Origin: Ylistrum balloti
Taxonomy: Eukaryota
DNA length: 64,000 nt
Assembly: GCF_031769215.1 (NCBI RefSeq)
Contig: NW_026782462.1
Coordinates: 1 to 64,000 of the forward strand
Direction of reading: 5' to 3'
The notes under the pieces are model-generated. The model did no database searches, was not told the DNA's origin, and worked only from the letters and a program-made list of their open reading frames with translations. Shown here in pieces: positions 7,094 to 50,337 of this stretch. The first letter of the stretch is position 1. Every line of letters begins with the position of its first letter. The translations under genes and the position numbers were made by a program.

Positions 7094-7402
7094 ACAAGAA
7101 TGTCTAGAGGATATGTAAATAGACTATATTTGATATGTTATGGACAATGATGTCTAGAGGTTATGTAAACAGCCTATTTCATGTGTTATAGACAACGAAG
7201 TCTGGAGATTATGTAAACAGATTATATATTATGTGTTATGGACAATGATGTCTAGAGGTTATGTAAACAGACAGATTATATATATTATGTGCTATAGACA
7301 ATGATGTCTGGAGGTTATTTGAATAAACTTTATTTGATGTGTAATAGACAATGATGTTTTGAGGTTATGTAAACAGACTATATTTGATGTGTTATACACA
7401 AG
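7049..7402 (+). repeat. 50-bp minisatellite (~7 units) beginning inside the last coding exon of copy 1
   Basis: Units resemble gatgtctggaggttatgtaaayagactatattatgtgttatagacaat at ~50-bp spacing. The first unit encodes DVWKLCELTITDVL*. Confidence 0.9.
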
Positions 7403-10050
7403 GATACACAAAGATTTATAGCTCTGTTGCTTATCCAATACATTAATGTTACATAGGTAACTCGCTCCTTTTCTTTATGTAGATAATAAAATTTTTGCTG
7501 AAGTCGGTGATTTATGTGTAGAATATATAGGTTTCATTTTAAGTATAGAATATTCTTTTCTATTTTTTCCCCAAAATTGAAATACATATGATATTGGAAT
7601 AGTTTGATATTACTAGACTAGTCTATTAGATATTTTATCATTTTACTCAAGAAATCTGTGTCTGTAGTTGTGTATTTTGACATACGCTATGTAATAAACT
7701 GAATACAGGGTAAAAATGTCATCTAATTTGATGGTGTAGCTAGGATTTATTTAATGACTTTACAAAGTAAAGTATAATAGATATAATAAAGTATAATAAT
7801 AATACCAGGTTCTTGTATACCTATTAAAAGCAAAGGCGGGTTTACAGTCATTTCCATGGTATCGGGTCATTTGCCGGAGGGAGCATACACTGTGAGCTGG
7901 ATCTTTTGGTTATTGAGAAACGGTTGAGATATTTTAACACATTTGACCCTTGTAACTTTGAATCTGAGTCATGTCTTTCATTGGAACAATTTTGTTAGCA
8001 CGCTACAGGCCTGTTATCAGCACCCTGACGCTTTTAGTTATTTAGAAGTCGAGAATATTTTCGTATGATTGATCTCAGTAACCTTGAAAGGGGGCAAGTG
8101 CATTTACTTGAACAAACTGAATAGCTATTCCCCTCAACCTACTGTGTAAACAATATCAGTAGCCTTGACATATTTGCTGATCAAATTTGAGATTTTTGAC
8201 AAGGAAACCTGATACAAGATTGGAACAATTATAATCCGAAGCGTGCAATACGATATAAAGTGCCAAACGTCAAAATATTCAGACCGACCTCCGAGGAATT
8301 CTTCAGTTCAAAACTTATTTCACCCTGTAAAAGACTAAGCCTTCTGAATAGTATATTAGTTTCCACAGTGTTAATTAACATTTATAACTGAACACTACAT
8401 GAACTCCTACATTCGTTTCATATCTCGATAGATTAACAAATAATCCGGTCCATGGACGAGTATTAAAATCGCCACTTATAGCTTAACAGCCACAGCTGCT
8501 AGGTGACGCTTTGTCAGGAAATTAACCCAAAATAAGGGAAGAATGATAAGTGATTACTTCAAAACGTTGGATAGTGTACACATCGTAAGGACAATATATT
8601 CGATAAAATGTTTCATGTGTAAGTTGGCGACCTCCAACGAAAGACTTTTCGGGAATATATATATATATTTATTACTTGCAGTGCATGCATATCTACATGA
8701 ATACTACCTTCAACAAGTACAGATTTATTAATATTGATATTAATGGCCGGTTCCTTATCCTGTAATATTTAAGACCAGATATGATAGGCTCATTTTTGTT
8801 ATACCTGGAACTGGGCAGCTGAATCGGCCAAAAGCGTACCAGATCAGTGCTGACTAGACCAGTCAGCTCAAGTCAGCTAAAATCAGATCACGTCGATTAT
8901 GACTGGACTAGAGCAGCCCTAATAAGTCAAATTCAGACCAGATCAGTCCTGACTGAATCGGAGCGGCTCAAATGAGGCAAAATTATATTAGACTTTGTTT
9001 CGATTAAAATACTGCCACATTTGCTAACGGGTTGAATAAAGGTTCCATGCATTAACAAGAAGCAATACATATCTAGCAATAGATGGAGTGTATGCTGTGT
9101 AACGAACGGACGAAAATTAAAAAACGCTCAAATCCAGATGACAGATAAAAATTATTTTTATCTATATATATATATATATTTACGTGACCATATTAGTTAA
9201 TTTAGCTAAATAATAAACAAGAAATTCATTAACAACAGAAAATGTCTTACACCTTATTCACAGAAAACTATATCATTTACCTGTCTTAACGTAAGAGAAA
9301 AACAAGTCTCGCTGGATTTCCAGAATAAGATTTATCCGTTTCGCAGATATATATCAGTCGCTGTTTTATTCAACATCAAATGTCGCAAAAAGAAAAGTTT
9401 TCAGTTTTTAAAAAAAAAGCAGCCTGATTGGAACCTGTAAGACTTTAAAGAGGTTTCAGAAGAAAAAAAATCCAGCTCACGCAATGGCGATACGTTAGTC
9501 TTATAATATAGTCCTGGAGATACACAAACACCAACAGGTCTGGACTTGTAGTAAGAGAGTGAGTGTTGAGATTTCAGAAAGAAAAAAAGGGATCACACAG
9601 AGTAAGGATGAGTGAAGAGATTTCAGAACAAGTGATGATACAGAAGAGGTGTAGGTAAGGATTATCAAGATGGCGATCGGACTAACCAGTCGAGCGTAAG
9701 TCAGCTCAAGTAAATTTGGTCCAATACTAGGGAAAATGTTGTGACATATTTTATACCAGAATGTGTGTAAAGGAACAGTGATTAACATGTGATAAACCAT
9801 AACAAAATTCAAGACGTATTTTGGAGACATTTACGGAAAATTTTATTTTTCTTATGTCAGTATATATTACTATATTGATGAGTATTGTTCAGTTGGGACA
9901 AACACATGTGCTATAAATAGCTGTGTTATACATGGACTTATACATTCCTTTGTTGTTATCGGTTTTTACCCGTGGACAGGTAAGCGTGCAATACCTGCTC
10001 TGTATTAGCTCGTGTCTAGTGTCCAGTGACTATTGCGTGAAAAGTCGTTA

Positions 10051-10929
10051 ATGAGTGGTGTACGGACCAGAATGACCAGTAATTCTAAGTCATCACAGGC
10101 TATGCACCCACGCTGTTCAGATGCTGGAGAAGATGTTTCTTTAAAATTTGTGCAAAAAGAACTTAAAAATATGCGGGAGGAAATGAAGATACTACACACG
10201 CTGGCAAGATCAGAGGAAATTGAAGTGATAGTGGGCAGTGCACTAAAAAAATTTAAAGATGAGATTTTAACAGAAACAAAAAACTTAGTCGAAAATAGAG
10301 TGAGGGAGGCCGAGGAAAAGGTGGATGGTTGTCTCATGGAATTTGACTTGTTAAAAGAACAGATAAAATAAAAAGACGAAGAAATTGAAAATCTTAAAAA
10401 TGTGGTTAAATTGACACAGTGTAACACAAACTACAGCCAACAGTATAGCCGGAAATGCAATATACGATTGATGGGGATGAAAGAGGTTACTGATGAGACA
10501 GCAGATAACCTGAGAGATAGATTTATACAGACATGTAAGGAAGCAACAAAGGATGAGGAGGCCAGGGATAGAGTAAACATCAACAAAAGGGACATTGTAG
10601 CTATACACAGACTCCCGTCCAGGGCAAAACCTCGACCATTGATCGTCAAATTTCACAACAACGAAGTGAAGAGTACATGCATGAGAAGGAAAATAACCAT
10701 CAAGGAAAAATGTGGGTTGAAGATGTAAGACGACATCAAGAAAGACAACCTAGACCTTATACAAAGACTGAACGGACACAGAGACATTGAATATGCATGG
10801 TACTACAATTGTGCTATATACGGAAAATGTAAGACCACAGAGATGAAGGTACGCTTCGATCTTTTCGACGACATTAAAGAAGTGGTCAGACAACACGTTA
10901 TGGATGTGGAGAACGCTAAAAGAAAATAG
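10051..10929 (+). pseudogene. LINE ORF1 (coiled coil + RRM-like nucleic-acid chaperone) with two in-frame TAA stops
   Basis: One frame across ORFs 10033..10371 and 10402..10728, continuing to TAG at 10927-10929. Motifs QQYSRKCNIRLMG, IHRLP..RPLIVKF and AWYYNCAIYG are typical of invertebrate L1/Tx1 ORF1. Confidence 0.75.
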
Positions 10930-11199
10930 AGAGAGACACTCATACATATAACAATGTAAGTAAGTTAACTTTTTGTAAAGCCGTTTCTGTGTTTGTACCA
11001 GTTTTTATCTAGTATATGTCAACTTTCGTGGCTTAAGATAATTTTCTTTTCTCTCAGTGAAAACGACGATATAGTTCTAGTTGCAGTAAAAGTGAAACTG
11101 TAATATGATAAGTAATTACACTATTGTATATGCTATTTGTATACTGCATGATAATGACATTTTGCAAGTACAGATATAAGGCAGATATATGTATCTATT

Positions 11200-11700
11200 C
11201 ATTACCATTTTCATTGTTCATTAAAATCTAGCAAGAGGAGGTGACCAATGCGACATACAGTTGTTATATTATATTGCAATTGTCAAATATCAAATATCAT
11301 TCTATAGTAAGTAAATAAGTATATAGATCCTTTCACGATCCCGATGAGCTCGGCAAGGTACTTTGCCAGCAAAAATCCGGTTTGGTGAAGACTTGTACTT
11401 GTCATTAAATGATATACAATAGATACATGTAGTAAAAGAAAATGTGCAACATAGAAAAGAGTATGTCCTCTTTATCAAAACACAAATCAACTGTTGGAAG
11501 ATTTTATGTTTTTCTTTATTATGATAGTGTGCAGTGAAAGTTATTATATACATATATATGAAACTGTTATATAATAAGTCTTACTTTAAAATTTCAACAC
11601 AAAATTTAATATATATATATATATATATAAAACCATATGTATATGACTCTTGTGTCATAGGTATCACTATATATATACAGATATCTCTAATTTGTTCATA
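11200..11700 (-). mobile_element. Heavily deleted second CR1-derived fragment, locally similar to 11985-13540
   Basis: Shared blocks: cattaaaatctagcaagaggaggt (~11218 and ~12005), gcaacatagaaaaga, aaaacacaaatcaactg, ttaaaatttcaaca, gtcatagg..atcactatatatata. Confidence 0.55.
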
Positions 11701-15554: not shown

Positions 15555-18500
15555 GATGATTTACAAATAATGTCTCTAAATGTCAGGGGACTCCATTCAA
15601 ATAAAAAAAGAGAATAGACTTATTTAATTGGATTAAAAAAGAAAAATGTTACTGTTGTATTCCTACAGGAAACACATAGCTGTGTAGAAATTGAGACTAA
15701 ATGGGAAGATGAGTGGGGAGGAAAAGGAATACTTAGTCACTGTAGTACATCAAGTGAAGGGGTTGCGATATTTTTTGGAAACAAAGTTGAAACTAATATA
15801 CATAGTAGAGAGTTAGATCCAAACGGTAGATACATTATATTAGATGTTACAATTAATGGAGCTAGAATCACTTTAGCAAACTTATATGGACCTAATAATG
15901 ATGTTCCTGATTTCTTTGAAAATATCTTTAGAAAAGTCAGGTTAATCTCAAACACAAAAATTGTAATAGGAGGGGATTGGAATGTAACACAAGACAAAAA
16001 ACAAGATACTGACAATATTATTCAAGATAATCATAGATTTTCTAGAGAGTGTATCATAAGAAATATGGAAGATTTAGACTTCATTGATATTTGGAGAGTT
16101 CTCAATCCTGAAAAAAGAAAATTCACATGGCGCAGAAAAAACCCAATCAAACAAAGTCGTTTAGACTATTTTATTATCTCACAAGATGTTTTTAGTACAG
16201 TTACAGATGCCAAAATATCACCAGGCTATAAGACGGATCATTCATGTATATCTGAAAATTTATTGGAAATTTAACACTGCTTTATTAAAAGATAAAACTT
16301 AGGTTAATTTGGTAAATCAATGTATAAAAGACACTGTTAATGAATATAGGATTTCTGGGGACTCAGAAACATTAGAAAATGTTGAACTACGAATAAAGGA
16401 TCAAATGATGTTTGAAATAATTAAAATGAAAATTAGAAGCCTAACAATTGAATACTCTATTAAAGCAGCAAAAGAAAGAAAAAGAAGGGAAAACATTATT
16501 ACAGAAAATATAAAGAAATTAGAAAAGTTAATGAAGAGTCAGCCTTCCAATGAAGTATATGAACAATTAGAGGAAGAAAATAAACTATTATCAGAGGAAA
16601 GAGAAAAGAAAATTGAAGGAATTATGCTTAGGTCAAAGGTTACATGGTACGAAAAGGGTGAAAAATGCTCAGATTTCTTTTGTGGTCTTGAAAAGCAAAA
16701 TTTTGTTAATAAAACGATTAATGAGCTTATCAACGAAAAGGGTGAACATTTAACAAACATAACAGAAATATTAGAGGAAGAAAGACAATTTTATAAAACA
16801 CTTTATACAACACAAAAATATTGTGATAATGAGTCTCCACTATTTAACCATGGAAAAATGATAAGTCAGATAGAAAAAGAAAGTTGTGAAGGTCTTATTA
16901 CAATTAATGAATGTAGTAAAGTTCTTCAAGATATGAGTAATAGAAAAAGTCCTGGATCAGATGGGTTTCCAGCAGAATTTTTAAAGTTTTTTCTGGAAGG
17001 ATATGAAATACTTTATATGTAAATCAATAAATTATGCTTATAATAATGGATCACTATCAGACTTTTAATGTCAAGGAATAATAAGTTGTATCCCGAAAGA
17101 ATCAAAAGATAGAAGATTAATAAAAAAAAAATTGGAGACCTCTGACTCTATTAAATACTGATTATAAGATAGCTTCTGCAGTAATAGCAAACAGAATAAA
17201 GAAAGTACTACCATCAATTATCAGTGATACACAGAAAGGCTTTATGAAAGACAGATTTATTGGTGAAAATACAAGGTTAGTCTATGATATAATGCATGAT
17301 TTAGAGGAAAGAAATATGTCTGGTTTATTACTATTGGTAGACTTTGAAAAAGCCTTTGATTCTTTGGAATGGAAATTTATACAAAAATCTTTGCAATCTT
17401 TTAACTTTGGTCAGTCTTTGCTCAAATGGATACGTTTATTATATTATAATGCAAAAAGTAGAATAATTAACAATGGATATTTTTCTTCATTCTTTGAGAT
17501 ACAGCGTGGTTGTAGACAAGGGGACCCGATATCGCCATACTTACTTTTAATTGGGATAGAAATTTTGGCCATACAGCTAAAAAAAATCAAAATATTAAAG
17601 GAGTGAAAATAAATGTTAAAGAATATATGTTAGGTCAATATGCTGATGATGCCTTTCTATTTCTAGATGGCTCTCCTAGGTCATTATCAAGTGCAATAAC
17701 TGATTTCAATATTTTCTATGAAGTTTCTGGACTCAAATTAAACATTGAAAAATGTTGATTAATATGGGTTGGTAATAAAATGTATTCTGATGAGATTATA
17801 TGTCCAGAATACCAGTTCAACTGGTCATCCCAAGATTTCAAGTTACTTGGAATACGGTTTTCCTTGGACCTGTCACATATGATTGAGTTGAATTGTAAAG
17901 AAAAACTTTCCAAAATACGTAAACTTCTGGGAATGTGGGCCAGAAGAAATCTTACACTTTTAGGGAAAGTTACTGTTATTAAAACATTAGCCCTTCCTCT
18001 ACTCATACATCTATTCTATTCTCTCCCAAATCCTAGCAAACAGATGATTAGTGAAATAAATTCAGTGTTTTTCAGATTCATTTGGGGACACAAGCCAGAA
18101 AAAATTAAGAGAAATACAATGATTTTAGACTATGAAGAAGGAGGATTAAAGATGGTACATATTGAAAGTTTTATGAAATATTTAAAAATTAAATGGATTA
18201 AAAGGTTATATGAAGGGACAGGAGATTGGCAATCTTTAGCCAAATCCAACTACAGTAAATATGGAATGGACAGAATGTGGAACCTGGATAAGGAAAAAGT
18301 AGAAGAAATATCAGATAATATAAAGAATCCCTTTTGGAGAGATGTTGTTTTAGCATAGAATGAGTATAAAGATGATAACATTGACCCAAATGCATTTGTT
18401 AATGGTGACCTTTTAAATCATATTCCTCTAAATTTATTTAAGTAATTTAAATCATATGAGACAAATGGGGTCAAAACAGTAAAGGATTTAGTGGATGAAA

Positions 18501-21672: not shown

Positions 21673-22864
21673 TCCGCATGGTGATCAGAATTGCCTGACT
21701 GTCGTCCAACTCTTATCAAAGTTTCAAGCGTCACTCATACCACAGTAGTTTTATACTGATATTGTTTACACAGTAGGTTTAGGGGAATAGCTATTCAGTT
21801 TGTTCAAGTAAATGAACTTGCCCCCTTTCAAGGTTACTGAGATCAATCATACGAAAATATTCTCGACTTCTAAATAACTAAAAGCGTCAGGGTGCTGATA
21901 ACAGGCCTGTAGCGTGCTAACAAATTTGTTCTAATGAAAGACATGACACAGATTCAAAGTTACAAGGGTCAAATGTGTTAAAATATCTCAACCGTTTCTC
22001 AATAACCAAAAGATCCAGCTCACAGTGTATGCTCCCTCCGGCAAATGACCCGATACCATGGAAATGACTGTAAACCTGCCTTTGCTTTTAACTAGGTATA
22101 TAAGAACCTGGTATTATTATTATACTTTATTATACCTATTATACTTTACTTTTTAAAGTCATTAAATAAATCCTTGCTATACCATCAAATTAGATGAAAT
22201 TTTACCCTGTATTCAGTTTATTACATAGCGTTGTCTTTATAGAGTGACGTTTGTATGTTGTATTAAAATCAGAAAGTATCGAATACTTTTCAGATTGAGC
22301 TAAAATGCCGACTGGTTGGGTGATCAAAGCCGAGGGACTTTGACCGATTCTATTAGAAGATGGGAAAACATCTGCGAGCTGGGAATGAGCATATACCACA
22401 ACGGATAAATCTACGGTAGTCGTATGTTTAGTATTGGTATAACACAAGATTGAAAGTAATGAATAAGAATACAAATCCTTGACATCAAGTTTATTGGAAT
22501 ATATAGGATCTATAAATTACATACAATCCTCGTCAAAAAGCAAGACAATCATTGGTAAAAATATACAGTATATGAAGATATATGTCAAAATACACAACTA
22601 CAGACACAGATTTCTTGAGTAAAATGATAAAATATCTAATATACTAGTCTAGGAATATTAAACTAATCCAATATCTGATGTATTACAATCTAGGGAAAAA
22701 ATAGAAAAGAATATTCTATACTTAAAATGAAACCTATATATTCTACACATAAATCACCGACTTCAGCAAAAATTTTATTATCTACATAAAGAAAAGGAGC
22801 GAGTTACCTATGTAACATTAATGTATTGGATAAGCATTAGAGCTATAAATATTGAGTATCCTTG

Positions 22865-23459
22865 TGCATAACACATCAAATATAGTCTGTTTACATAACT
22901 TCCAGACGTTCTTGTCTATAACACATACTATATATTTTGTTTACATAACCTCCAGACATCATTGTCTATAACACATAATATATAATCTGTTTACATAATC
23001 CCAGACATCAATGTCTATAACACATCAAATATAGAAAGTTTACATAACCTCCAGACATCATTGTCTATAACACATAATTTATAGTCTATTTACATAACCT
23101 CCAGACATCATTGTCTATAACACATCAATTATAGAATGTTTACATAACCTCCAGACATCATTGTCTATAACACATAATATATGTTCTATTTACATAACCT
23201 CCAGACATCAATGTCTATAACGCATCAAATAGATTCTATTTATATAACCTCCAGACATCAGTGTCTATAACACATAATATATAGTCTGTTTACATAACCT
23301 CCAGACATCATTGTCTATAACTAATCAAATTTAAAATATTTACATAACCTCTAGACATCATTGTCCATAACATATCAAATATAGTCTATTTACATAACCT
23401 CTAGACATTCTTGTCTATAACACATCAGTGATGGTAAGTTCACATAACTTCCAGACATC
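22865..23459 (-). repeat. 50-bp minisatellite (~12 units) overlapping the stop codon of copy 2
   Basis: tacataacctccagacatc recurs every ~50 bp (23041, 23091, 23141...). Confidence 0.92.
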
Positions 23460-26400
23460 CTTGTTGGCGCTCTGCATTAGAACATGAATATTTGAACATT
23501 TCTGTAAATCTTTACATACACATTCAAAGTCACATTGAGGAACTGCAGAATTGGAACTTTGTGACAACATCCTACAGAATACGATATCCGATTCGGTGCT
23601 GCATTTGTCATTTTTAGAAGGTACTGATGTTCCAACCTGAAAAACAATTGCTATACATAGAACATTACTTCGACAAACAAATATACAAATCTTAAAATGA
23701 TAATGTTTTTGTATTATGCTCCATTGCTCGGAAAATGTGGTTAATGCGCCATCAACTGTTCTCGAAACAAGGTCAGAACAGTTTGATACAGCTTTAAAGA
23801 CGAAAAATTCTAAGATCCCCTCCTGACCTTTATAATGCCTAAAACTTTAATAGTATTTTAACAATAAAGTCTGAAAAATACCTGAAATTCATTTCGTGAC
23901 ATGACTCTTATCTATAATGTGAACTCTTATTCACGAACACTACGACCTCTTTATCAACAGTTTCTTTTCCTAATCAATATTAAACAATCTACCTTTCTAA
24001 TATAATTCACACTTCACTGATTAATCACCTCAGTGCTAGTTTCAGTATCAGTAAAATATTCTGAGTCAATGCTGCCAACGTGAATGTCTGCACATATACA
24101 TGCTAAATTTACATAATTATAACTTACATGTAAGGTTTTTTGTCCCACTCGAGCACACTCTATGTTTTCACCAGTCACGTGAACTACAAATTTCCGTGAC
24201 GTCACATTGAACAGAATCAAATCTTTAATAATCATCCACAACATAGGTGGTGAATTCCCCGGCACTGGCAAATCAAAGCAAGTGTTCAAGTCCTGGTCCA
24301 GGGCATAAGGTAGCATTTTTAACAATCTGTTGTTGTCATCTTTCATTACGGTAATATGGTGTTTCACTGTAAAAAATACATAGGAAACATAAGTATGGAT
24401 TTCAACCTAAAACCTAACGAATTCTAGAATATATATAATTCTCAGCAACGTGTTATTGTCGTATTACTTTGATATATTTTTACTGAAATAGAATGGTATG
24501 CTTTTTATTTAATTCTTAACACTCTTCATCTGTCGGTGAAGAATTTATCTTTCCGAATTTTGCGTAACTCGCCGACACGTATTTTCAATTGCTACTATAC
24601 GCATTGCACAGATATCTTCATTTCTTCATGTCATGCTAAATTGTAGGGTATATAACTGATTGGAATATTGATTTTTATTTTTTTTTTCAAACTGTGAACA
24701 TTTTTCTTTGAAATTATGGCAAAGTTATCAACTAGTTCGTGTGAATGTGTTCTGGTATTTTCTTTGTATTTCTAACAGAAACATGCATGAATTATGGACG
24801 TCTATCTCATGTGAAATAAGAATGCAGTCAAAAGTGTAGGCATGAAAATTGAAATTATACATGGATACGTAGTCATTGAAGATCAAGGTCAAAGGTAACT
24901 ACAAAACTCTTCGATTCATCATGATCAAGGTAAACTATATCAATCGCAGTCATTGCAGAAACACATACATTCAAATTAAACTATCTGGAATAACGTTACA
25001 CCATCTTGATAATAACGGTAGAAATTACTTTAAAAAATTATCTATGGAGTCTTTTTGATTGGTGAACATCAAAGAAATTTAAAAGAATCACTTGAACTGT
25101 CATCCTCGAACATGAAATAAAATTGAAACTGAAGTATCAATGAAAAGTAGGTACAAATGGAATTATGTTGAATGATTATCATCCAAGGAAACCAAGAAGT
25201 ATTACATTGAACAATCATCATCAACGTAAATTAAAATCGTGGTAATAAAATATAAAATATGTATTGAATTACGTAGAATAATCATACCCAAATAGAATTG
25301 AGTGAAGTTACGTTGAGCAAATGATATTTATCACCAAGAAATGCGTTTTAAATGTGACGATTTCGTCAATTTTATTGAAAACATGTTATTGCAAGCTACC
25401 ATACATTTTTTTCTGGTTTCATCTTTGAGTTGATTGAATCTGAAATTACCATATAAAGATATACTTACGCGGGTCCCATACAGCTTTCAAATTGCAAATC
25501 ACAGTACAAGGAGTGGTCGAGAAATAGAAGTAAGCTATAATCTTTGGAGATTCTAACACATACACGTTACTGTCGTTCTTCCACTGTATGAAATAAACAC
25601 GTGTATTTACGAAGTCCATTTATTTCAACACAGCATTGCTTACAAATCATTTTCTTTATAATAAATATTTCGTTTCCACATCTTCTTTTATTAATAGATT
25701 ATGAAATATTCAGTCATTTTTCGTGGAATCAATATGTCCCAATATAGTCGACAATTTATCATGTATCCCTGGTCTAGCTCCACATTCGCAATGAATAATG
25801 ACTTATCGTGCTTCAGGATTACAATAATTCAGATTTCATATGATCAATATATACCTCCGTCGTTTATATTAGAATTATAAACATCACAATATGAACAATG
25901 ATTAAATGCTGAATCATCCCTTTCTTGACAACAACATACCTTCATTCCCCACCTTTAGTATTTGATATAGCAAATAATTGGCTCAGAATATATGGTTTTG
26001 AATGAAGCAGACTGATGAAGTTTACGGTTGAGTTTTACGGTCGTCAGAATGATCTCATTTGAAAAAAAAAATGTTTCTTGTGACTACATTTTTAAACCCA
26101 GATTTTGACGTTTGAAAATAGTTTAGCTCCTGGCACATACATATAAAGCCTAAATTTGTTAGACATTCAAACTATCAAGTGGAACATACACCAATAATGA
26201 GGGAGAACAAGGAACAAATATTGACGAAATCAGATTCTGATAATCAGAGGGAAATCACAAGAAACTTACGTTATTTAACATAAAGAAAACTATGTGCCAA
26301 TTGTAATATATATAAAGTATTTAAAAGGAATGGAGTATGTTTGTTAATCGGTTCTAATTTAATACTTTCAATATCGTTCCATCGGTCAGTATTCAACAGA

Positions 26401-29400
26401 CTCCTTACTGTAGTAAACCAAAAACTTACTAGTAATGCCTCTCGATGGTAGTAGCTACCAAACAGACTATAGTGGTACCATATGCTCTGAGGGTCAACAT
26501 CAGCAACCTTCACAATTGCTTTCAGAACTTTAAAATCGGGATGGTATTCCTGGCAAGAAAAGAAGCCAACCTCAAAACTATAAAGCATCCATACAAAAAC
26601 AGAACGGATATATATTGGAATCCATTGGTAAAAGACAATCTTGTACGAGATATCATTGTAATTAGTTATATCTAAACACACCTAATGGATATTATAACGT
26701 TCATCTATGATTGCACGAAATTTCATTTGCAAACCTTTATCAATTTAACTTTAAATAATCTCAAACTCCACATTTATTCAGAATAGTGCAAATGGCGACT
26801 TCGCCATCTTGTTAGAACATGATATCTTATTGTGGTGAATATTGTTGTATGGGTATATAAATATAAGGAGAATGATGTGTAAATATGTAGTACAGAACAG
26901 GTCTGTATGATATAGTTTGCAATCACACGGAGAGCGTGGAAAACACGTCTATTCTCAGGTGTTATCGGGTGCAAACTACACTCAATATTGTAACGCATCG
27001 TCGCACATAACCTTCGGGACGAGTTGACATGATCGAGCGTGTCGCGATGGCCAACTCGTCAAAGATAACGTCAACACAATGTGCATCCAAAGATCCTTTT
27101 CCACAACAATATTGCTCTCGATGTCAAGCTTAAATGCATTAGTTAAGCTCCTCCAAGTATCATAGTAATTATGACGTTATATATTTCTAACGTAAGCATC
27201 CTGTAACATAATTGCATGTATCATTTTATCCATTCCAGTAAACAATGATTGCCGAAAATGCCCCTGTGTATATGACCAAGGTTTACATGGCATGTGCTGA
27301 ATCGTTCGGAACTGCTGGTATGATTTTCTATGAACTGAGTAATCTCCGTGTAATTGAAATTATATACGAGTACGATAATATTGACATGTTTGTATTTTCT
27401 TGCTGTTTAAGTAACATATTTCCTGTTATGACACGGATCAAATTTTCATGACCAGGTTAATGTCACATGAAATAATGAAAACATCATCCATGCGAAAATA
27501 ATCTACGTATACGTGTTTTCGACCAAATTAGATATTTTCTTCTATAAGTTTCAGTTTAGTTCCAAATTTGTCTCTACTGTATATAATTGAAATGTACTAT
27601 TCATTACTCTGTCCTTTGTTATTTCATTTATATATATACTTTTTTTACAATTAGTTCGTCAATGCAACCAGTTAGATCGTGTAAGTATATAACTATATAT
27701 TTGATATATTTTCATAACAACATTGAAAAACAATATTGATATTGTGTATATTTCCATTGACTATTTACTTAATTTTATTTCTACTTACGATTGTTGGTTT
27801 TGGTATTGTCAGTTCTTCAGTCCAGATCGATACGTTGTTGCTGATAATCCTGGGTTTGAACGACGACGTTTGAATGTTGTTAATATCATTGTCGATATAA
27901 GTTAAACGTATGTCCATCTTAATTTTGTCACTATTATCATGAAGATTCACATTTGACAACGGTGAAATATCGACAAGGACTTTCTCAATCATCCCATCAC
28001 TGCGTCTGTTAAAAGAAAATAAGTAAGTTGAAAGATAGGCATGATTATGATCGAAAAAGAAAGATGTTGAGTTACTTTGAGAATAACAATTACTACCTCG
28101 AAAAAAACTATGACCCAATCCACCTTTCTACTCTTAGTCTGGAAAGTATTTTGGGCTGCACGTTTTTATAATGATATTAAATATCATTAATAATGTTTTG
28201 TCTAATTGTATCCTTTTTTCAAACATATATCAATATCTAATATTGTTAAAGGAAAAAATCCTCTGCTGTAATCGGTCCTATCTCCAACAGGTTTCGACAA
28301 AATGAAATGTTAACATGAAACTGGTTATTTCCTAGTGATCAGTTCAGATCGATAACCTTCATCGTCTTTAATGCCGTGGAATATATAAAAGCAGTTAACG
28401 ACTTTTTTATGATAATGCAATGTTTTGTTGACCACAGAAAGACTATTTTCACCTTGGGAATATCATCCTTTTCTAGTTCACTAACCTCTAGATTAGCCTG
28501 AAAAAGTCAATAACTCTATACCATTCTACGTCAAACATGTTTAGAAAAAAATGAGTCATGTGATTAAAAAATGGTACAGAAAACCCAACTTGTCCGTAGG
28601 ATGGTAATACAAACAGTACAGATATTTCCACCAAGCTGTGTGATAAGGATGATGATTTCAATATCCCATTGTGAATTTTGCATTTTGGATAGCAACAATC
28701 CTGAATCCCCAACCTATGGTGTTAACATGTCGCAGTTAATTCGATATTCAAGGCCATGTTCCATTATAACCATTTCCTTGCAATACGTCATATACTGATA
28801 GACAACTCTTATATCACCAACATCAAACTTATCTTCACTTGGGGGTGAAATAGGTCTAGTAATGTTTCATTATTATGTGATTAGAATACTTCTATACTAA
28901 ACAATCAGTATCATTATTTTTTTTCTATAAATAGATAAAGATAAAACTTTACAGTCAATGAAGAATTTTCCCAAACGATCATTGCTTTATATACTCATTG
29001 CCAGTGATCCTGTTTTTTTCAGTCTCTCCGAATAATAACCATTAATATCCTAAACATCATATTTCTTATATCAGATTGGACTGTTTGTGTTATTTTAAAA
29101 ATAAACGCCATATATCTAATGCAAAATCTGTGAAGTGTTAGCAGGACAGACGAAAGACTTTCTGGTAAACCAGACCAAAGGAGCATTGATGATTAATACT
29201 GTTTTCTTTCTGTTTTAACTACGCGTTTATTTTTATTAAATCAAAACATCGCGCTGAATACTTTCAAACATTAAGAAAGTCATTTTTACACTGATATTAA
29301 GTAATGAATGTAGTTCACTATAATCCAATTTCAGTCATTTCAAACTATTAAAAGTGAGACTAGCTCTCTAGTGGTCATACAAAAGAAGAAGAAAAAAAAA

Positions 29401-32400
29401 TTAAAAACCAAAAAACACACACAAAAATTAAAAAAACAACATCAACTCAAAACAAAAATTGAAAAAATTGAAAAACATTTTCTCTTTCTCTTCAGTGGCC
29501 CATGATTTTCTACAATCAATCTGTTTTTCTACGTTACTTATCCTTTCAATACACCGATAGAATTAAGAAAAAGCATATTTATTTGATTAAAATAAGATTG
29601 AAAAACTATGAAAGCTTTCAAACACCTTCTTTCTAACAAATTTTTTTTTTTATTAATATGAAGGATTCATTTCATTACAATTGTCACATTTTCTTACAGA
29701 GAAAATATCTTAAGATTTTATGCTTGTTCTTACCTCGTAATATTTTCATGAAATCTACCGAAAATATTGTAATCTTTTCTTAATTCAAAGCTACACATGG
29801 CAAATGAAGATCCTGTTGGCAATTCGACAGATAGACGACCGTAAGATCGATCCCTCTTAGTAATTAGAGTGAATGCAACATCAGTGGTGAAGGTGATGGA
29901 GCGACATTTCTCGTGCAGCAAAATGTTCATATCAAGGTTTAAAGATGGTGGTGTCTAAAACATTCAGCAAAGGAGTCAACAATGATTTAATGATTGGTAC
30001 CTATGTTTATAATTCTGGAAACAAGTTTTAGGTTTTGCTGGACCAATTTAACTCGTCAGAATTATCGGTTTAAACATTACTACCCGACAAAGATGAACGT
30101 CAAAATTGTTCTTCGGGAATGAAAGCTCTTTAAACAGTTATAAATACTTTAATTATCGATCATCACCATTCTTTTAGTACAGACAATTGATGCCAAAAGT
30201 GTCTAATCGACAATTAACTAAGACATTGAACATTTGTTTGATTTTTCGATTCTTGCAAATATTTTCAGTTATACAGCATCTCCCCCACTACAAAATTGTC
30301 CGATGCTCCATTGTAGGATAAACAGACCATCATAAGAAATTACATACCATAAATATTTCCTGGTCGGTTACATTAAAGTAAATCTTGAATATCTGTGGTG
30401 ACACTTTTCCCGGGTTTATAAATTCTATTGTAAGTTCATGTGATGAATTAGCTTCTACAATATGCGGTTGTGCTATAACCCATAATTCAAAACCAAACTT
30501 TCCGTCAACGGATGTTATTTTGTTATTGATAGGTATGTTAGCAAGTAACGCACTCGTTGTATCGGGTATTTTCGATTCTCTCAGCTTTGAGACACATGGA
30601 ATGTTTCCACCAATGTCGTCAATAGTTCTGACTGCTGCCATGACCATTCCGTCCCCGCCTGGTCCATCGTACCGCCTTGTAGAACAATATAGTACAAATA
30701 ATCCAGCAGTAAGTGGTGGTACTGTCCAGGTCAATGTCACCCTACCTTTACCACCTTTTGGCAATAACTGCGATATTTGGCTCGTCGTAGCGTTTATCCC
30801 TTCAACCTGCAAATGAGACATTTTACCATGCATTTTCGGATTACTGGAAAGCAGAAATTCATGTTCAGCAATAAAAATGATGAGAGAGAGATCCATATGA
30901 ATTATCAACTTTTTGTTTCGGTGATTTTTTATCACCGATCACCGTTTATCAGTCTTGCTAACTGATAATCTTACAAGATCAATACTAAACTGGTGAAAAG
31001 TAAAAAAAAAAAAAATGACAATCTGACAATGAATTTCTACATCCTCATTTATAAACTTACAGCTATTCTTTCGGTTGCGTTGAAATGTTTTGTTGTTTTT
31101 GCGACCGACAAGAAATCCACTTCTAAAGATATGTTCAGGGGGTAAGTCTCTCCAAGAGTCACGCCATTGGTCAGTAGTAAGATAACTTTGAAATCGATGT
31201 TATCGGCAGTAGATGATGAAGTGTTTGCGTCAACAAATCCTGTATTGAAGACAAGTTTCCCGGCATAATTAATGAAATGCATATTAACGCGAAAAAGTCC
31301 AGTAAAATTAGTATATATAGCCAAAGAACAACTATCCTGTTCGTGATGGAAATCGACATTATTTAATGTCAGGTGAGAACTAATTGATGTTTAAGAAATA
31401 TCTTGAATTTCGTTTGAAATAGTCTTATCTTAAAGTTGATGAATTACAACGTATAGCTATCATAAAAGATACATAATCATGAAATACACATTAAATAACG
31501 TTATTGAACTTCTGTCAGATTTTTGCACCCGTTTTGCTATATTAGTATACTGTACAGTTCTCTGATTACCTTTGTTCGGCACGTAACCGAAGTCTATAAC
31601 TCGAGTATCTGGACCTTTACCACAGAAACCATCAGAAGGTAAAATATCCGCACTAGTAGGTATGATGTCTTTGTAGTGCTCTCCAACAGACTGTATAGAT
31701 ATCGAAGCAATCCTAAGAAACTTGGTTGGGCTTCTTAGCACTAGTTTGTATGTTGATAAAGGATTCCTAAACGACGTCTTTAGATAGAATACTTTCAAAC
31801 TACTTTCTGAAAAACCTCCTATGTTCGGAATGTCTGTCGACAAGTTGGACTTAATTGTTGATTTCTGCAATTAACGGAAACATTGTAATATATGTGATTT
31901 GTTTTGATATGGTAACAGTTTGAAGGGAAAAGAAACAAAGAAAAATAATAATTATTGATATTTAAAAATCCGAAAAAGAGGAAAAGGACAGAATCGAATA
32001 GTGTATGACTTTTAATGTGGTAAAAGAAACAAAGTAAGAATAATGAAATTCAGTTACAAAGAAATTAATTTTTTTTTCAAATGTCCTTTTTGTTTCATGA
32101 TGTTAGGTACGGAGATCTTATCAAATTAGTAACTATGTCTCAATGTGCCGCATTGATATACAACAATCCGGTTTTTGCTACCAAAAAAAGGCAAAAGCGC
32201 TTCTCAATTATCAGTAAACATTAGAAAATAAGAAACCAGATGATATAGATAGAATAACAAAAGGGTCACAGAAGATATAAATGCATCTGAACTTACATGA
32301 ACAGGTCTCAACACAAGGACAGAAGACACTGCTATTGATGCCTTTTCTAAACTGAGAGTTGCGTTTACAGTTCGCGTAGAATTTTCAGAGATGCCATCAA

Positions 32401-34346
32401 TGTTAGCCATGAGGTATTCTACAGCTACTTTCATAAGGCAGAAGGTACATTTGTCTCCAGCATCTTCGTCAGAAGTAGTTGTGACATGTGTAGACATGGA
32501 AAGATCTGTAGTATTATCGAAGTATGTCGTGTTGTTCGAATCGGCAAGAAGTGAAGATATAGTGGATACATTACTTGTGACAGTAGGTACAGAGTTGAAG
32601 GTTGAATTAACGGTGATGGTCAAATTGGAAGTAACGGAGTTAGGGACTTCAAAAGTGATTGGTAACTCAGTAGTAATATCTAGCAATTTCCGAGTACCTT
32701 TGCAGTCAATGTTTCCGAAATGATATGTAGCCTCGATAGGAAAACGTGCAAGCTGGAACGAAAATAATAGTATGCCTTATTTACGCCCTATGGATAATGC
32801 TAGAGTGAACAAAGGACGTATTCATGTTAAGGGCATGCTAAGGTATACTGGTGTAGGAACTATCATGAAATCAAAATCAGACATTGTAGGAAATGTAGAT
32901 TTTATTCAAAATGCTAGATAAAAAGCGTCAACCTAAAGAATCTGCGAGACATTTTCCGCGTTGAAAACCAAATTTTGCATATACTCTTATTGTTATGTCG
33001 TCTGTAATTAAACAGAATTGATACTCTTTGTCAACCCAAGAAGGTATTACACTCTATACCTGCTCTTTTGGTATACACATTTGGTATAGCAACCATTCCA
33101 TAATCACTTACCCCCCTTCTTGGTCTCTTGATCACAGTCGGTTTAAATATTCCTTTTGCCAGATTTAAAGAATCGTCATGAGAATCCAGGTAAACATCTG
33201 ATATCATCACCGACGTGTCGGGGGGTGTCACGAGATGGATGAACGCGTTTTCTGTAAGTCCATGTGGAATATACAAATCATGAACAAGCGTTTTTATTCT
33301 TCCCGGATAAATATATCTGTCTGTGTCTTCAATGCATATTTTGTATTGTGAACAATTCCTAACAGCAGTGGTTTCACATGTTTTCGAGATAGTATCTGGA
33401 AATCCTGTGGAAAAACAAGAACGACACTCTTTGCTTTGGCAGAACTCATGTAATGATATTTCACTTTCATGTTTTAACTTCTTTTGTAGACATGTACCTA
33501 AATGGTGTTCTGAAATTATCTGATATATGAAAATAAAGAAATTTATAGTATTAGGGAACTAGTGCACCTTACGTCTAGAATTTGACTTTTTTTTCTCGAT
33601 ATTGAATATTCTTCAATCGCCTTCTAAGCCTGCAAAATTTAGGCCCTTTACGTCACTGACGAATCTTAGAAGACAAAACATCCATATGTTGCAGTTTAGT
33701 TCATTATTTGACTCTACTGTACCTAATTCTATATTGGTATTAAAAACGTGCTATTACTAATATATCTTGAACAATCTTCTGCTTTACTTCATCATCACAC
33801 CATACATCCAGTCTCTCTTCAAATACGATTAACAATATTCAAATAAAGAACGGCACCTCTGAATCCAAATGTAAGTTGTAATTCTGATTAAGGACCCCTG
33901 GATAATTCTGATAAGCTTCGTCGGTTTATCGGTGATTATAATCAATGAGAATAAGACTATCTGTATTTCACGCTTATGAATCATATGCTGTGACTTATTT
34001 GATTCTGATCGCAGAACTGAAAATTCTCTATCTTTTTCTTTAACGTTGGAGACTCTCAAATAGCTGGGAATTACGTTTCTTTTAAATTTTTTGGTAATTT
34101 TTAATGAACAGTTTAATTAGTGAGATAAATCTGAATGAACCATTATACTTTAATCTGAAAACATATTTGTGACCTAGTTCACAAATGTTTATTAAACCTT
34201 GTCATTATTCAGTCCAACGCTAGAATAAAACGAACATGTGATGGTGATGTTTGCTTGAAGGAGAAATGCATTATTCTTATTTGGAGTCACTTACCTTGAA
34301 CGTTGCAAGCCAATATAATAAATATTCCAATGAAATGCAGAAACAT
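23415..34346 (-). CDS. Paralog copy 2, complete 12-exon gene, 999-aa predicted secreted protein (signal peptide, beta-sandwich-like repeats, Cys-rich C-terminal module)
   Basis: Exons (minus): 34346-34295, 33404-33112, 32752-32297, 31864-31570, 31239-31061, 30806-30348, 29954-29734, 28005-27789, 26681-26430, 25583-25469, 24366-24128, 23636-23415. They sum to 3000 nt, one open frame, canonical splice sites. N-terminus MFLHFIGIFIILACNVQG looks like a signal peptide; C-terminus is WKLCELTITDVL*. Confidence 0.82.
28570..28790 (+). mobile_element. Penelope-like element remnant in intron 7 of copy 2 (mirror of 1715-1905)
   Basis: Same degenerate SQLIRYSRPCS-containing translation as in the left arm. 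Confidence 0.7.
33650..33692 (+). pseudogene. Decayed paralog of the hammerhead ribozyme in intron 1 of copy 2
   Basis: acgtca-CTGACGA-ATC(ttagaa)GAC-AAA-AC(atcc)AT-A-tgttgc at the orthologous position. G10.1, G12 and G16.2 are replaced by A. Confidence 0.6.
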
Positions 34347-39390: not shown

Positions 39391-40842
39391 TGTAAATGAG
39401 TGAAAACAAAATGACGTTTGCGCAATATTAGAAAATGGTAATGTTTTACATTACAAAACACAAGGGGGTTACCAAAATCATTCAAGCGTGAAAGTCTGTA
39501 TTAGCGAAAGAGCTGCACGAGGTTTTCTGCGACTAACTTGTATCTTCGCTTGAATTTCATAAACATTCAAACTGACAACTGTTCCTTAGGACTTAGAAAT
39601 CACCGAATCTTGCTATCTACTTTATCATTATGCCCCGGCTGTCACAAGTACAGAGAAAAAGGGCTGTAGGCATGATCCAGGCTGGGGAGTCTCGCCGTCG
39701 AGTTGCACGGCATTTTGGTTGCAGTGTTAAGACAATTATCCAGTTGGTAAGTCGTTTAAACCAAACTGGGTCAACATCCGATCGTCCCCGAAGCGGCCGA
39801 CCCCGTAAAACGACCGCCAGGGATGACCGTCGTATACGATGGATACACTTGCGCAATCGATTCGTAACCGCAGTAGAGACTACAAGGACATTCTTTGGGC
39901 GTCGTGTGTCTCCCCAAACAGTCCGTAACAGGTTGAGGGCCTACCAATTGAAAGCGTGGCGTCCTTACACTGGACCCAATTTGTTGCGACGTCACCGTAA
40001 TAATCGGCGTAACTGGACCCGTGTTCACCATCGTTGGGCCTTACGACAATGGAACAGTATTCTGTTTTCTGATGAGTCCAGGTTTTGTCTGCAACACGGT
40101 GACGGAATTCGCAGAGTGTGGAGGCGACGAGGGGAGCATTTTGCGAACTGATGCGTCGCAGAACGGGACCGCTTTGGTGGCGGAAGTGTAATGGTTTGGG
40201 GTGGTATTTGTGGGGGGACTCGTACCAGGCTTGTGTTAAATGGCAATTTAACCGGCATTCGATATCGGGACTAAATTTTAAGACCAGTGGTTCTGCCATT
40301 CTTAAGACGCCATGGCGTTGGCGCCATTTTTCAACAGGATAACGCACAAGCGCACACCAGTCGCGTCAGCAGAACTTTCTTGCAGCAGAATAACGTACAG
40401 GTGTTAGATTGGCCATCTAAATCACCTGATTTGTCACCGATTGAGCATGTCTGGGACGTTCTTGGGCGACACGTGAGAGAACGTCAAAATCAGCCGTCAA
40501 ACTTGCAGGAGCTGGCCCAAGCCTTGATTGCTGAATGGAACAACATCTCTCCTCGAATTATCCGCCGGTTTACGAGTTCCATGCGACGACGCTGCAATGA
40601 TGTTTACTTCGCAAACGGTGGCCATTCCCGTTACTAATGGAGTTACCTTTGAAATTGACCCCAACGTCCTTTACAGTCGAATAAAATCAACTGAACGCAA
40701 AGTTTTCTTAATGAACCATGACTGCAGTTTTATCAGAATTGATCAATTACTTTATTCGTATTTGATTGGTAAGGATTTATGAAGGGGTTAATCAATTAAT
40801 CACAGAATAAAGTAGTGTTACCTTTTCTTTTGATGTTTAGTA
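39391..40842 (+). mobile_element. Tc1 (DD34E) DNA transposon, inactivated
   Basis: Contains the transposase pseudogene. Boundaries come from the paralogous empty site at ~46360-46400. TA lies at both ends. The right end resembles a Tc1 TIR; no matching left TIR was seen. Confidence 0.85.
39630..40637 (+). pseudogene. Tc1-family transposase (335 codons) with two in-frame stops (TGA 40149, TAA 40272)
   Basis: Paired-like HTH with RSGRPRKT, then LFSDESRF, VMVWGGI, FQQDNA and WPSKSPDLSPIEHVW; 34 residues separate the second D and the E. Confidence 0.95.
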
Positions 40843-49200: not shown

Positions 49201-49229
49201 AACCATACATCTCGAGACATCATTATGAA

Positions 49230-50337
49230 TAGCACATAATATACAGTCTGTTGACATAACCTCCAGACATTCTTGTCTATAACATATCAAAAACAGAATG
49301 CATACATAGCCTCCAGACACCCCTGTCTATGACACATTAGTTATGTTAAGTTCACATAACCTCCAGACACCCCCGTCTATGACACATTAGTTATGTTAAG
49401 TTCACATAACCTCCAGACACCCCTGTCTATGACACATTAGTTATGTTAAGTTCACATAACCTCCAGACATCCTTATGTATAGCACATATTATATAGTCTG
49501 TTGACATAACCTCCAGACATCCTTATGTATAGCACATAATATATAGTCTGTTGACATAACCTCCAGACATCCTTATTCACATAACCTCCAGACATCCTTG
49601 TCTATAACACATCAGTGATGGTAAGTTCACATAACATCCAGACATCCTTGTCTATATCACATCAAAAACCGAATGTTCACATAACCTCCATACATCCTTG
49701 TCTATAACACATCAAAAACAGAATGCTTACATAACCTCCAGATATTCTTGTCTATAACACATAATATACAGTCTGTTTAAAAATCTCCAGACATCCCTAT
49801 TTTTAACACATCAGTTATGTTAAGTTCACATAACCTCCAGACATACTTGTCTATAACATATCAGTTATGTTATGTTCACATAACCTCCAGACATCATTGT
49901 CTATGACACATCAGTTATGTTAAGTTCACATAACCTCCAGACATCCTTATGTATAGCACATATTATATAGTCTGTTTACATACCTCCAGACATCCTTATG
50001 TATAATAAACAGTCTGTTGACATAACCTCCAGACATCCTTGACTATAATACATTAGTTATGTTAAGTTCACATAGCCTCCAGACATCCTTGTCTATAACA
50101 TATCAGTTATGTTATGTTCACATAACCTCCAGACATCCTTGTCTATAACACAGCAGTTATGTTAAGTTCACATAACCTCCAGACATCCTTGTCTATGACA
50201 CATCAGTTATGTTATGTTCACATAACCTCCAGACATCATTGTCTATGACACATCAGTTATGTTAAGTTCACATAACCTCCAGACATCATTGTCTATAACA
50301 CATCAGTTATGTTAAGTTCACATAACCTCCAGACATC
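49230..50337 (-). repeat. 50-bp minisatellite (~23 units) overlapping the stop codon of copy 3
   Basis: Plus-strand unit ttatgttaagttcacataacctccagacatccttgtctatracacatcag with 50-bp period; two unit subtypes are present. Confidence 0.92.

Follow-up and report, generated by a model that had tools for sequence, protein, structure and literature searches.

The window analyzed here, i.e., the first 64 kb (64,000 nucleotides, nt) of contig C605 in the 648.5-Mb, 1372-contig assembly of Ylistrum balloti, contains three related copies of a gene of a previously unnamed protein family. On the evidence of its sequence, copy 2 is a real, intact 12-exon gene, whose fast-evolving family counts at least 16 loci. 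We consider it probable, with a rough probability of 0.6, that these intact, multi-locus genes encode secreted extracellular binding or adhesion proteins with a variable stalk of β-sandwiches and a conserved C-terminal domain. The window is AT-rich, with a guanine plus cytosine (GC) content of 31-35%, and a six-frame self-comparison revealed the three units:

Copy 1: 1-7093, plus strand, inverted and incomplete; the contig start falls inside exon 6.
Copy 2: 34346-23415, minus strand, intact, 12 exons, 955 codons.
Copy 3: 61208-50293, minus strand, 12 exons, 903 codons, 2712 nt, no internal stop.

The model of copy 2 was built by reading the sequence and scoring in-frame GT/AG pairs. Exon lengths and phases were counted, and all searches were run exon by exon or on database homologues, not on the joined product. 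The coding exons total 2868 nt, i.e., 955 codons plus the stop, with no internal stop. All 11 introns are of the GT-AG type with consistent phases; the donor is GTAAGT, GTAAGA, or GTATGT in 10 of them, and each acceptor is a YAG preceded by a pyrimidine-rich tract. Protein positions in the following list refer to homologues from the scallop Argopecten irradians (XP_069108351.1, XP_069120411.1, and XP_069142736.1), which are described below.

Exon 1: 34346-34295, minus strand, ATG and a hydrophobic, signal-like peptide of 17 residues; exon end in phase 1, donor GTAAGT.
Exon 2: 33404-33112, minus strand, 293 nt, beginning of the N-terminal cysteine-containing domain; acceptor CCACAG, donor GTAAGT.
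Exon 3: 32752-32297, minus strand, 456 nt, Ser/Thr-rich stretch with eight N-x-S/T sequons.
Exon 4: 31864-31570, minus strand, 295 nt, first part of predicted β-sandwich domain 2; motifs SIQSVGEHY and DFGYVPNK.
Exon 5: 31239-31061, minus strand, 179 nt, second part of predicted β-sandwich domain 2; motif ADNIDFKV.
Exon 6: 30806-30348, minus strand, 459 nt, 153 amino acids (aa), a whole predicted β-sandwich domain; most variable exon.
Exon 7: 29954-29734, minus strand, 221 nt, first part of domain 4; tiles onto XP_069108351.1 at about 250-320.
Exon 8: 28005-27789, minus strand, 217 nt, second part of domain 4; motifs DISPLSN and SDKIKMDI; tiles onto XP_069108351.1 at 322-398.
End of intron 8: 26681-26550, minus strand, noncoding, 44 aromatic-rich codons including the polypyrimidine tract.
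Exon 9 (corrected): 26549-26430, minus strand, 120 nt, 40 aa; acceptor TTCTTTTCTTGCCAG, donor GTAAGT.
Exon 10: 25583-25469, minus strand, 115 nt, two conserved cysteines.
Exon 11: 24366-24128, minus strand, 239 nt, most conserved exon; invariant motif LPYALDQDLNTCFDLP; two of the nine cysteines.
Exon 12: 23636-23415, minus strand, 222 nt including the stop, seven conserved cysteines; C-terminus ...WKLCELTITDVL.

Several of these exons are readily recognized in the relatives. Exon 1 is 88-94% identical to that of copy 3 and close paralogs, exon 2 has stop-free matches in nine paralogs and tiles onto XP_069120411.1 from about residue 162, and the donor of exon 11 (CAT/GTAAGT) is retained in copy 3. 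Exon 3 of copy 3 is shorter by 56 codons, owing to a 168-nt in-frame gap.

The present model departs from the original prediction, which had also been made from the DNA sequence, at exon 9. An exon of 84 aa with about 20 aromatic residues had been proposed, based on an acceptor at 26681 that proved to be wrong: exon 9 consists of 40 aa, and the other 44 codons are intronic. In six diverged paralogs, the codons at 26681-26550 contain one to five stops, remaining open only in close copies, and in all nine diverged paralogs just 2-8 of the 44 residues are in common with copy 2. A YAG acceptor abuts the start of the short exon 9 in nearly all loci; in copy 2, it is pyrimidine-rich and ends at 26550. 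The scallop proteins have no residues corresponding to 26681-26550. Because of these stops and this divergence, the position of the acceptor, and the missing scallop residues, the aromatic richness is largely a translated polypyrimidine tract. The short exon 9, on the other hand, can be aligned over its full length in each of the 13 further paralogs and tiles onto residues 399-438 of XP_069108351.1 and 776-814 of XP_069120411.1. The length of about 1000 aa proposed for the product rests on the same wrong acceptor and is corrected to 955 aa.

The remainder of the 12-exon, phase-consistent, and stop-free model is borne out in copy 2, in copy 3, and in the visible exons of copy 1 (part of exon 6 to exon 12), whose coordinates are as follows:

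Copy 3, exon 1: 61208-61157, minus strand.
Copy 3, exon 2: 60446-60157, minus strand.
Copy 3, exon 3: 59836-59549, minus strand.
Copy 3, exon 4: 59190-58893, minus strand.
Copy 3, exon 5: 58552-58374, minus strand.
Copy 3, exon 6: 57706-57248, minus strand.
Copy 3, exon 7: 56988-56768, minus strand.
Copy 3, exon 8: 55239-55011, minus strand.
Copy 3, exon 9: 53371-53252, minus strand.
Copy 3, exon 10: 52408-52294, minus strand.
Copy 3, exon 11: 51278-51040, minus strand.
Copy 3, exon 12: 50514-50293, minus strand.
Copy 1, exon 6 (part): 1-127, plus strand.
Copy 1, exon 7: 532-752, plus strand.
Copy 1, exon 8: 2483-2699, plus strand.
Copy 1, exon 9: 3940-4059, plus strand.
Copy 1, exon 10: 4950-5064, plus strand.
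Copy 1, exon 11: 6142-6380, plus strand.
Copy 1, exon 12: 6872-7093, plus strand.

Copy 1 is 95-98% identical to copy 2 at the nt level, introns included, and retains every splice site of its visible exons. Copy 3 is more distant, with 49-88% aa identity to copy 2 per exon, and the comparison of these two copies is the more informative one. Their exons are 84.8% identical at the nt level and their introns 73.7%. The exon alignments contain six gaps (2.2 per kb), all of them multiples of three, versus 118 gaps (17.7 per kb) in the introns, where only 26 of 101 short gaps have a length divisible by three. The differences in exon length (3, 168, 3, and 12 nt) are likewise all multiples of three, and copy 3 retains all 22 splice sites (AG/GT). 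When the 398 observed substitutions were placed at random on the coding sequence, a mean of 12.3 stops and a minimum of 3 resulted in 2000 trials, while none is observed in either copy. Moreover, paralog pairs at a synonymous divergence (dS) of about 1.5 show ratios of nonsynonymous to synonymous divergence (dN/dS) of 0.26-0.27.

These data bear directly on the possibility that the copies are decaying or functionless duplicates, i.e., young pseudogenes or neutrally drifting segmental duplications, in which the open frames are a mere remnant. Such decay would be compatible with the dN/dS values of 0.84 for copy 2 versus copy 3 and about 1 for copy 1 versus copy 2, with introns that can still be aligned at 74%, with the transposable-element fragments lying between the copies, and with the lack of an RNA run among the sequencing runs listed for the stretch. 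It is nevertheless very improbable, given the absence of stops where 12.3 would be expected and at least 3 occurred in each of 2000 simulations, the exclusively in-frame exon indels, which are eight-fold rarer than those of the introns, and the 22 of 22 splice sites kept in copy 3. Paralogs at dS above 1 also keep open, collinear exons with a dN/dS of 0.26, and homologues are kept in scallops.

No exon matched a Pfam entry at E values up to 1 when the exon open reading frames (ORFs) were searched. A profile of exon 6, built from nine paralogs and run with hmmsearch against 1.84 billion representative proteins, gave only three strong matches (E = 8e-37, 3e-31, and 7e-31), all of them "uncharacterized proteins" of Argopecten irradians, i.e., the three accessions given above. 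The other matches (E = 3e-7 and weaker) are unrelated; the two that were checked are fn3- or Ig-rich proteins. Word-based searches with XP_069108351.1, with XP_069120411.1, and with the C-terminal region of XP_069108351.1 added one further protein, LOC110467119 of Mizuhopecten yessoensis (1.5e-106 against XP_069108351.1), for which a literature search found no paper. None of the four scallop homologues contains a Pfam domain, and a sequence search of the PDB with two homologue/exon profiles gave no match. As far as these databases reach, the family is represented outside this genome solely by scallop entries titled "uncharacterized protein". The view that it belongs to no named family is upheld by these results, the Pfam, PDB, and protein searches having found no full-length match to a characterized family or a transposon protein.

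The scallop proteins are true homologues: the exons of the window genes tile onto them in collinear order, and they share the nine C-terminal cysteines, an L-P-x-x-L-D motif, and the L-C-E-L ending, as seen in XP_069108351.1. They differ in having only 30-50% identity, and the four database models, with 307-849 aa compared with 955, are each incomplete; none has a name or an assigned function. When each exon set was aligned singly, sets 5-12 tiled without overlap on residues 37-627 of XP_069108351.1, and sets 2-10 on residues 162-844 of XP_069120411.1. On XP_069108351.1, exon 5 ends at 89, exon 6 covers 90-245, exon 7 ends at 320, and exons 8 to 12 cover 322-398, 399-438, 439-476, 478-556, and 557-627, respectively. 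The gaps are single residues located at split codons only. Since the exon sets tile end to end on the scallop proteins, the splice junctions are independently checked. Residues 1-88 of XP_069120411.1 correspond to the second half of a C-terminal module, which is followed by the N-terminal domain of the next gene, so that this entry appears to join two tandem copies in one prediction. The earlier warning that automated annotation might miss or split the gene is thus confirmed by scallop models that are truncated or, in one case, fused.

A transposable-element or viral origin of the product, which would account for the dispersed copies, is hardly credible. The many copies over several contigs, together with a reverse-transcriptase fragment and a Tc1-like helix-turn-helix (HTH) in the intergenic stretches, might suggest it. 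However, no exon matches a transposase, reverse transcriptase, integrase, or capsid protein, and the RVT_1 (17244-17603) and HTH_Tnp (39630-40148) matches both fall outside the genes. The gene unit itself is interrupted by 11 spliceosomal introns in conserved places and begins with a signal-like peptide, and its copies form local clusters, tandem or inverted, in which the introns have diverged, rather than dispersed, near-identical insertions.

The whole assembly was searched with exon 6, which gave 16 places, 15 of them stop-free; the family is therefore counted as at least 16 loci. The 15.5 kb around 13 further loci were examined, and in all 13 the model exons match in the same order and on the same strand, with no match containing a stop. 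Identities range from 30-60% (C4, C885a-c, C6a-c, C639, and C814b) up to 93-100% (C433 and C1310a/b). Three loci each are clustered on C885, C6, and C605 (the window), and two each on C814, where they lie head to head, and C1310. From these clusters it follows that tandem and inverted duplication are both real, in agreement with the mode of expansion first proposed. The proposal of three paralogs stands for the window, with the reservation that copy 1 is truncated by the contig start; the family as a whole extends well beyond it. A tree of exon 6 is star-like and poorly supported, and the scallop proteins form no clade in it. Its recent groupings are copy 2 with C433, copy 3 with C814a, and C6a with C6b, which suggests that some lineages of the family are old and others recent.

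The left end of the contig deserves separate mention. The exons of copy 1 are identical to those of a full copy on C433, except for one synonymous change. Its flank (7200-11257) is 100% identical to C1310:1361-5416 and C1310:31551-35591, two segments 30.2 kb apart on a 48.8-kb contig, and 95% identical to C394:137075-142063. This end of the contig probably belongs to a tandem array with units of about 30 kb that are present several times in the assembly, as haplotigs or as an unresolved repeat.

The product looks like a secreted protein, considering its signal-like start, the lack of a transmembrane candidate, its sequons, and its conserved cysteines. The product of exon 1, M-F-L-H-F-I-G-I-F-I-I-L-A-C-N-V-Q, gives the highest 19-residue hydropathy of the protein (1.99). 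No transmembrane candidate was found, as no later window exceeds a hydropathy of 1.4, and the product of copy 2 contains 20 N-x-S/T sequons and 23 cysteines. The signal-peptide-like start, the absence of a C-terminal transmembrane segment, and the many sequons noted in the original prediction are all consistent with these values.

Structures were predicted for the scallop homologues, with the exon translations of the window and the paralogs used as alignment rows. A MAFFT alignment of mixed fragments misplaced exons 5, 7, 9, and 12 and was not used for folding; correctly aligning fragment sets were chosen instead. The AlphaFold model of XP_069142736.1 (307 aa, equivalent to most of exon 4 plus exons 5 and 6) has a mean predicted local distance difference test (pLDDT) score of 81.7 and a predicted template modelling score of 0.74. 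It consists of consecutive β-sandwiches at residues 1-139 and 142-295, each with three strands, a long cysteine-bearing loop, and four strands, and it contains tandem Greek-key β-sandwiches of 100-150 residues. Residues 1-82, the equivalent of exon 4, form β-sandwich with pLDDT values of 77-87. According to this model, exons 4-5 and exon 6 would encode two tandem Ig-like β-sandwiches with the same strand layout, and the product is predicted to be all-β. The suggestion that modules recur along the protein is therefore supported in predicted structure, exons 4-5 and exon 6 giving like sandwiches. Its sequence support is weak: hhalign comparisons between exon profiles are collinear, with E values of 0.009 for exon 5 against the end of exon 6 and 0.05 for exon 4 against the middle of exon 6. 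MAFFT, unprompted, aligns exon 5 with the terminal part of exon 6.

Sandwiches of the same type, with 7-14% sequence identity, are found in bacterial fibrillar adhesins and pilins (PrgB, the C-domains of AgI/II, RrgB, BcpA, EbpB, and CfaB), and also in the thigh and calf domains of integrin α and the macroglobulin domains of C3, C4, C5, and α-2-macroglobulin. No single family stands out in the fold search, and there is no profile match to the adhesin, pilin, integrin, or macroglobulin families. Nor is any isopeptide bond, thioester, sortase signal, or usher signal evident, although no examination was aimed at these features. Unlike the bacterial adhesins and pilins, the present gene is an animal gene with introns, and the likeness concerns a possible way of working, not membership.

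The rate of change is unevenly distributed along the protein. Between copies 2 and 3, dN/dS is 0.84 overall, 0.76 in exons 2-5, and 1.05 in exons 6-8 (confidence interval, CI, 0.78-1.40). In exons 9-12 it is about 0.49-0.59, the value for copies 2 and 3 being 0.59 (CI 0.35-0.99). Two other recent pairs have similar rates in these blocks. The fast evolution postulated earlier is evident in the overall ratio and in that of exons 6-8. Exon 6 changes fastest (dN 0.34 between copies 2 and 3), and its codons 58-115 (about 30635-30462) reach a dN of 0.62 and a dS of 0.51, both two to three times as high as on either side within the exon. Judging from both rates, this core seems to have an origin older than, or different from, its surroundings. 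Conversely, exon 2 of copy 2 is 95% identical to that of C814a (L029:2486-2761), with a dN and a dS of 0.02 each, while the other exons of this pair are given as 55-92% or 74-82% identical; this is a sign that the 5' end underwent gene conversion or recombination recently. The mosaic of exons 2 and 6 points to patchy gene conversion, the variable core either escaping conversion or having been imported from a more distant paralog.

In contrast to the variable exons, exons 10-12 are, by all sequence comparisons made, a strongly conserved module with 9-11 cysteines and the most conserved part of the protein. Invariant columns make up 27% of exon 11 and 22% of exon 12, as opposed to 7-13% of the other exons. 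In diverged paralogs, exon 11 retains 59-82% identity (exons 11 and 12 together, 44-82%) where other exons have 30-60%, and it contains the nearly invariant motif L-P-Y-A-L-D-Q-D-L-N-T-C-F-D-L-P. The nine cysteines of exons 11-12, which had been reported as conserved in the terminal module, are indeed retained in XP_069108351.1 as well as in 11-13 of 12-13 paralogs; exon 10 contributes two more conserved cysteines.

This module could be a very divergent galactose-binding-like jelly roll of the discoidin (F5/8 type C) or F-type lectin superfamily, covering exons 10 or 11 to 12. The protein would then have a conserved glycan-binding head on a variable β-sandwich stalk, which would refine the binding/adhesion explanation rather than exclude it. 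F-type lectin/discoidin domain proteins include fucolectins and oyster sperm bindin, and like bindin, the present proteins are multigene or variable secreted proteins of a bivalve. The likeness concerns motif order, strand order, and language-model features. In an ESM Atlas feature search with residues 399-627 of XP_069108351.1, restricted to named clusters, the clusters listed were all of F5/8 type C, with scores of 0.85-0.87 that are below the tool's trust level. The first structural row is an F5/8 type C protein, with a template modelling score of 0.42 over residues 477-627. By eye, the motif and the predicted strand order resemble those of the F-lectin exons of the same genome, with a shared order of A-x-D, T/S-C, an aromatic pair and a strand, h-x-V-x-h, V-G-x-S, F-C, and a terminal L-C-E-h-x-h.

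Nevertheless, the module has nine cysteines in a pattern of its own, and Pfam, profile-profile, and fold searches failed to confirm the likeness. None of 42 sequences, including exons 10-12 of 13 paralogs, matched a Pfam entry, PF00754 and PF22633 included, at E values up to 10. When exon 11 was compared by hhalign with 11 genuine F-lectin exons, which cover the first half of the domain, the best local match was the ALDQD/AVDGN pair, yet E was 0.34 and the probability 0.2% over 13 columns. The sugar-binding histidine is absent, SC-x-HT of the F-lectin exons being replaced by TCFDLP or TCMDLP in all 13 paralogs, although this equivalence comes from an unsupported alignment. The AlphaFold2 model of XP_069108351.1 is fair only at residues 520-610, where it has six strands, and fold searches with it found nothing specific. 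A lectin-type head is therefore a tentative and somewhat doubtful lead, and the family is not assigned to the superfamily.

The genome contains at least 58 exon-level PF22633 hits (for example on C704, C937, C476, C546, C589, C143, and C129), several of which are in tandem, with three on C546 at a spacing of 9.6 kb. One hit (C433:549113-549319) is separated by 55 kb from the C433 copy of the present family, and none of the 58 lies inside a family locus. On this count, the F-lectin repertoire of the genome is large and without sequence relation to the nine-cysteine family.

Bivalve genomes are rich in lineage-specific expanded families, to whose products roles in immunity, adhesion, and shell formation are attributed; most of them lack a name and are poorly annotated. 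Under the binding/adhesion reading, the product would be a secreted, glycosylated rod of about five β-rich domains. At its N-terminus, a cysteine-containing domain with an optional mucin-like insert (exons 2-3) would be followed by two or three Ig-like sandwiches (exons 4-5, 6, and 7-8) and, at the C-terminus, by the conserved disulfide-rich domain (exons 9 or 10 to 12). The sandwich loops (exons 6-8, dN/dS of about 1) could vary freely among paralogs and provide a repertoire of binding surfaces, generated by duplication, in-frame indels, and patchy gene conversion. The constant C-terminal domain, in turn, might bind a conserved, perhaps glycan, partner, oligomerize, or anchor the protein to a matrix. 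The family may function in immune recognition, in gamete or cell adhesion, or in the shell or byssus matrix.

Several points weigh against this reading. The exon junctions depend on sequence conservation and the gene models of scallops, and the sequencing runs containing the stretch are of DNA type only, with no RNA run among the matches listed. The signal peptide was judged by eye and by hydropathy. The structural models represent scallop homologues that are about 40% identical, not the product of the window, and the sandwich that they match is a very common one; likeness of fold is no evidence of function. Modelling gave poor or no results for the N-terminal domain (exons 2-3), for domain 4 (exons 7-8), and for the C-terminal module, the model of XP_069108351.1 having a mean pLDDT of 45.5. 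The overall dN/dS of 0.84 is near neutral and the intervals include 1, hence positive selection is not demonstrated. Finally, some of the locus count may reflect assembly redundancy, as the copies on C1310 and C433 are 99.6-100% identical to copy 1.

A bolder version of the binding/adhesion reading, which we consider unlikely, is that of a previously undescribed family of diversified secreted receptors found only in scallop-like bivalves. Hypervariable loops in exon 6 would be kept diverse against gene conversion, on a new, conserved nine-cysteine domain, and would serve in self/non-self or gamete recognition. Mollusc FREPs and the expanded C1q and lectin families, as far as is generally known, likewise form tandem clusters with change focused in one region, a conserved scaffold, and in-frame indels. 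Unlike those families, the present one has no fibrinogen, C1q, C-type lectin, or Ig-superfamily sequence signature. If the receptor version is true, its domains would merit new family definitions. Independently of it, the clean exon model, the census, the domain outline, and the map of conserved and variable parts make the family testable by expression, localization, and glycan or partner binding, and existing scallop gene models have been shown to be truncated or fused. The interest is moderate, since the fold is common and such expansions are expected in molluscs.

Some minor features of the window accompany the genes. A 50-bp tandem array at 22858-23464 begins within the last 50 nt of exon 12 of copy 2 and continues downstream. 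The same array occurs downstream of the other copies, at 49211-50342 and 7044-7405, its length differing among the three, as seen from ladders of offset blastn matches, and the 50-bp repeat is also present downstream of family members on C433, C1310, C814, C639, and C394. Between copies 1 and 2, the ORF at 17244-17603 (plus strand) has an RVT_1 match (E = 9.5e-13) and neighbors another ORF at 16309-17019 (plus strand); the ORFs in 16309-17603, located in the 16-kb spacer that separates these tail-to-tail copies, probably represent a decayed retroelement. Between copies 2 and 3, the ORF at 39630-40148 (plus strand) matches HTH_28 (1.7e-7) and HTH_Tnp_Tc3_2 (3e-7) and looks like a Tc1/mariner-like remnant. 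This ORF lies in a GC-richer stretch, with a GC content of 38-40% at 40-44 kb.

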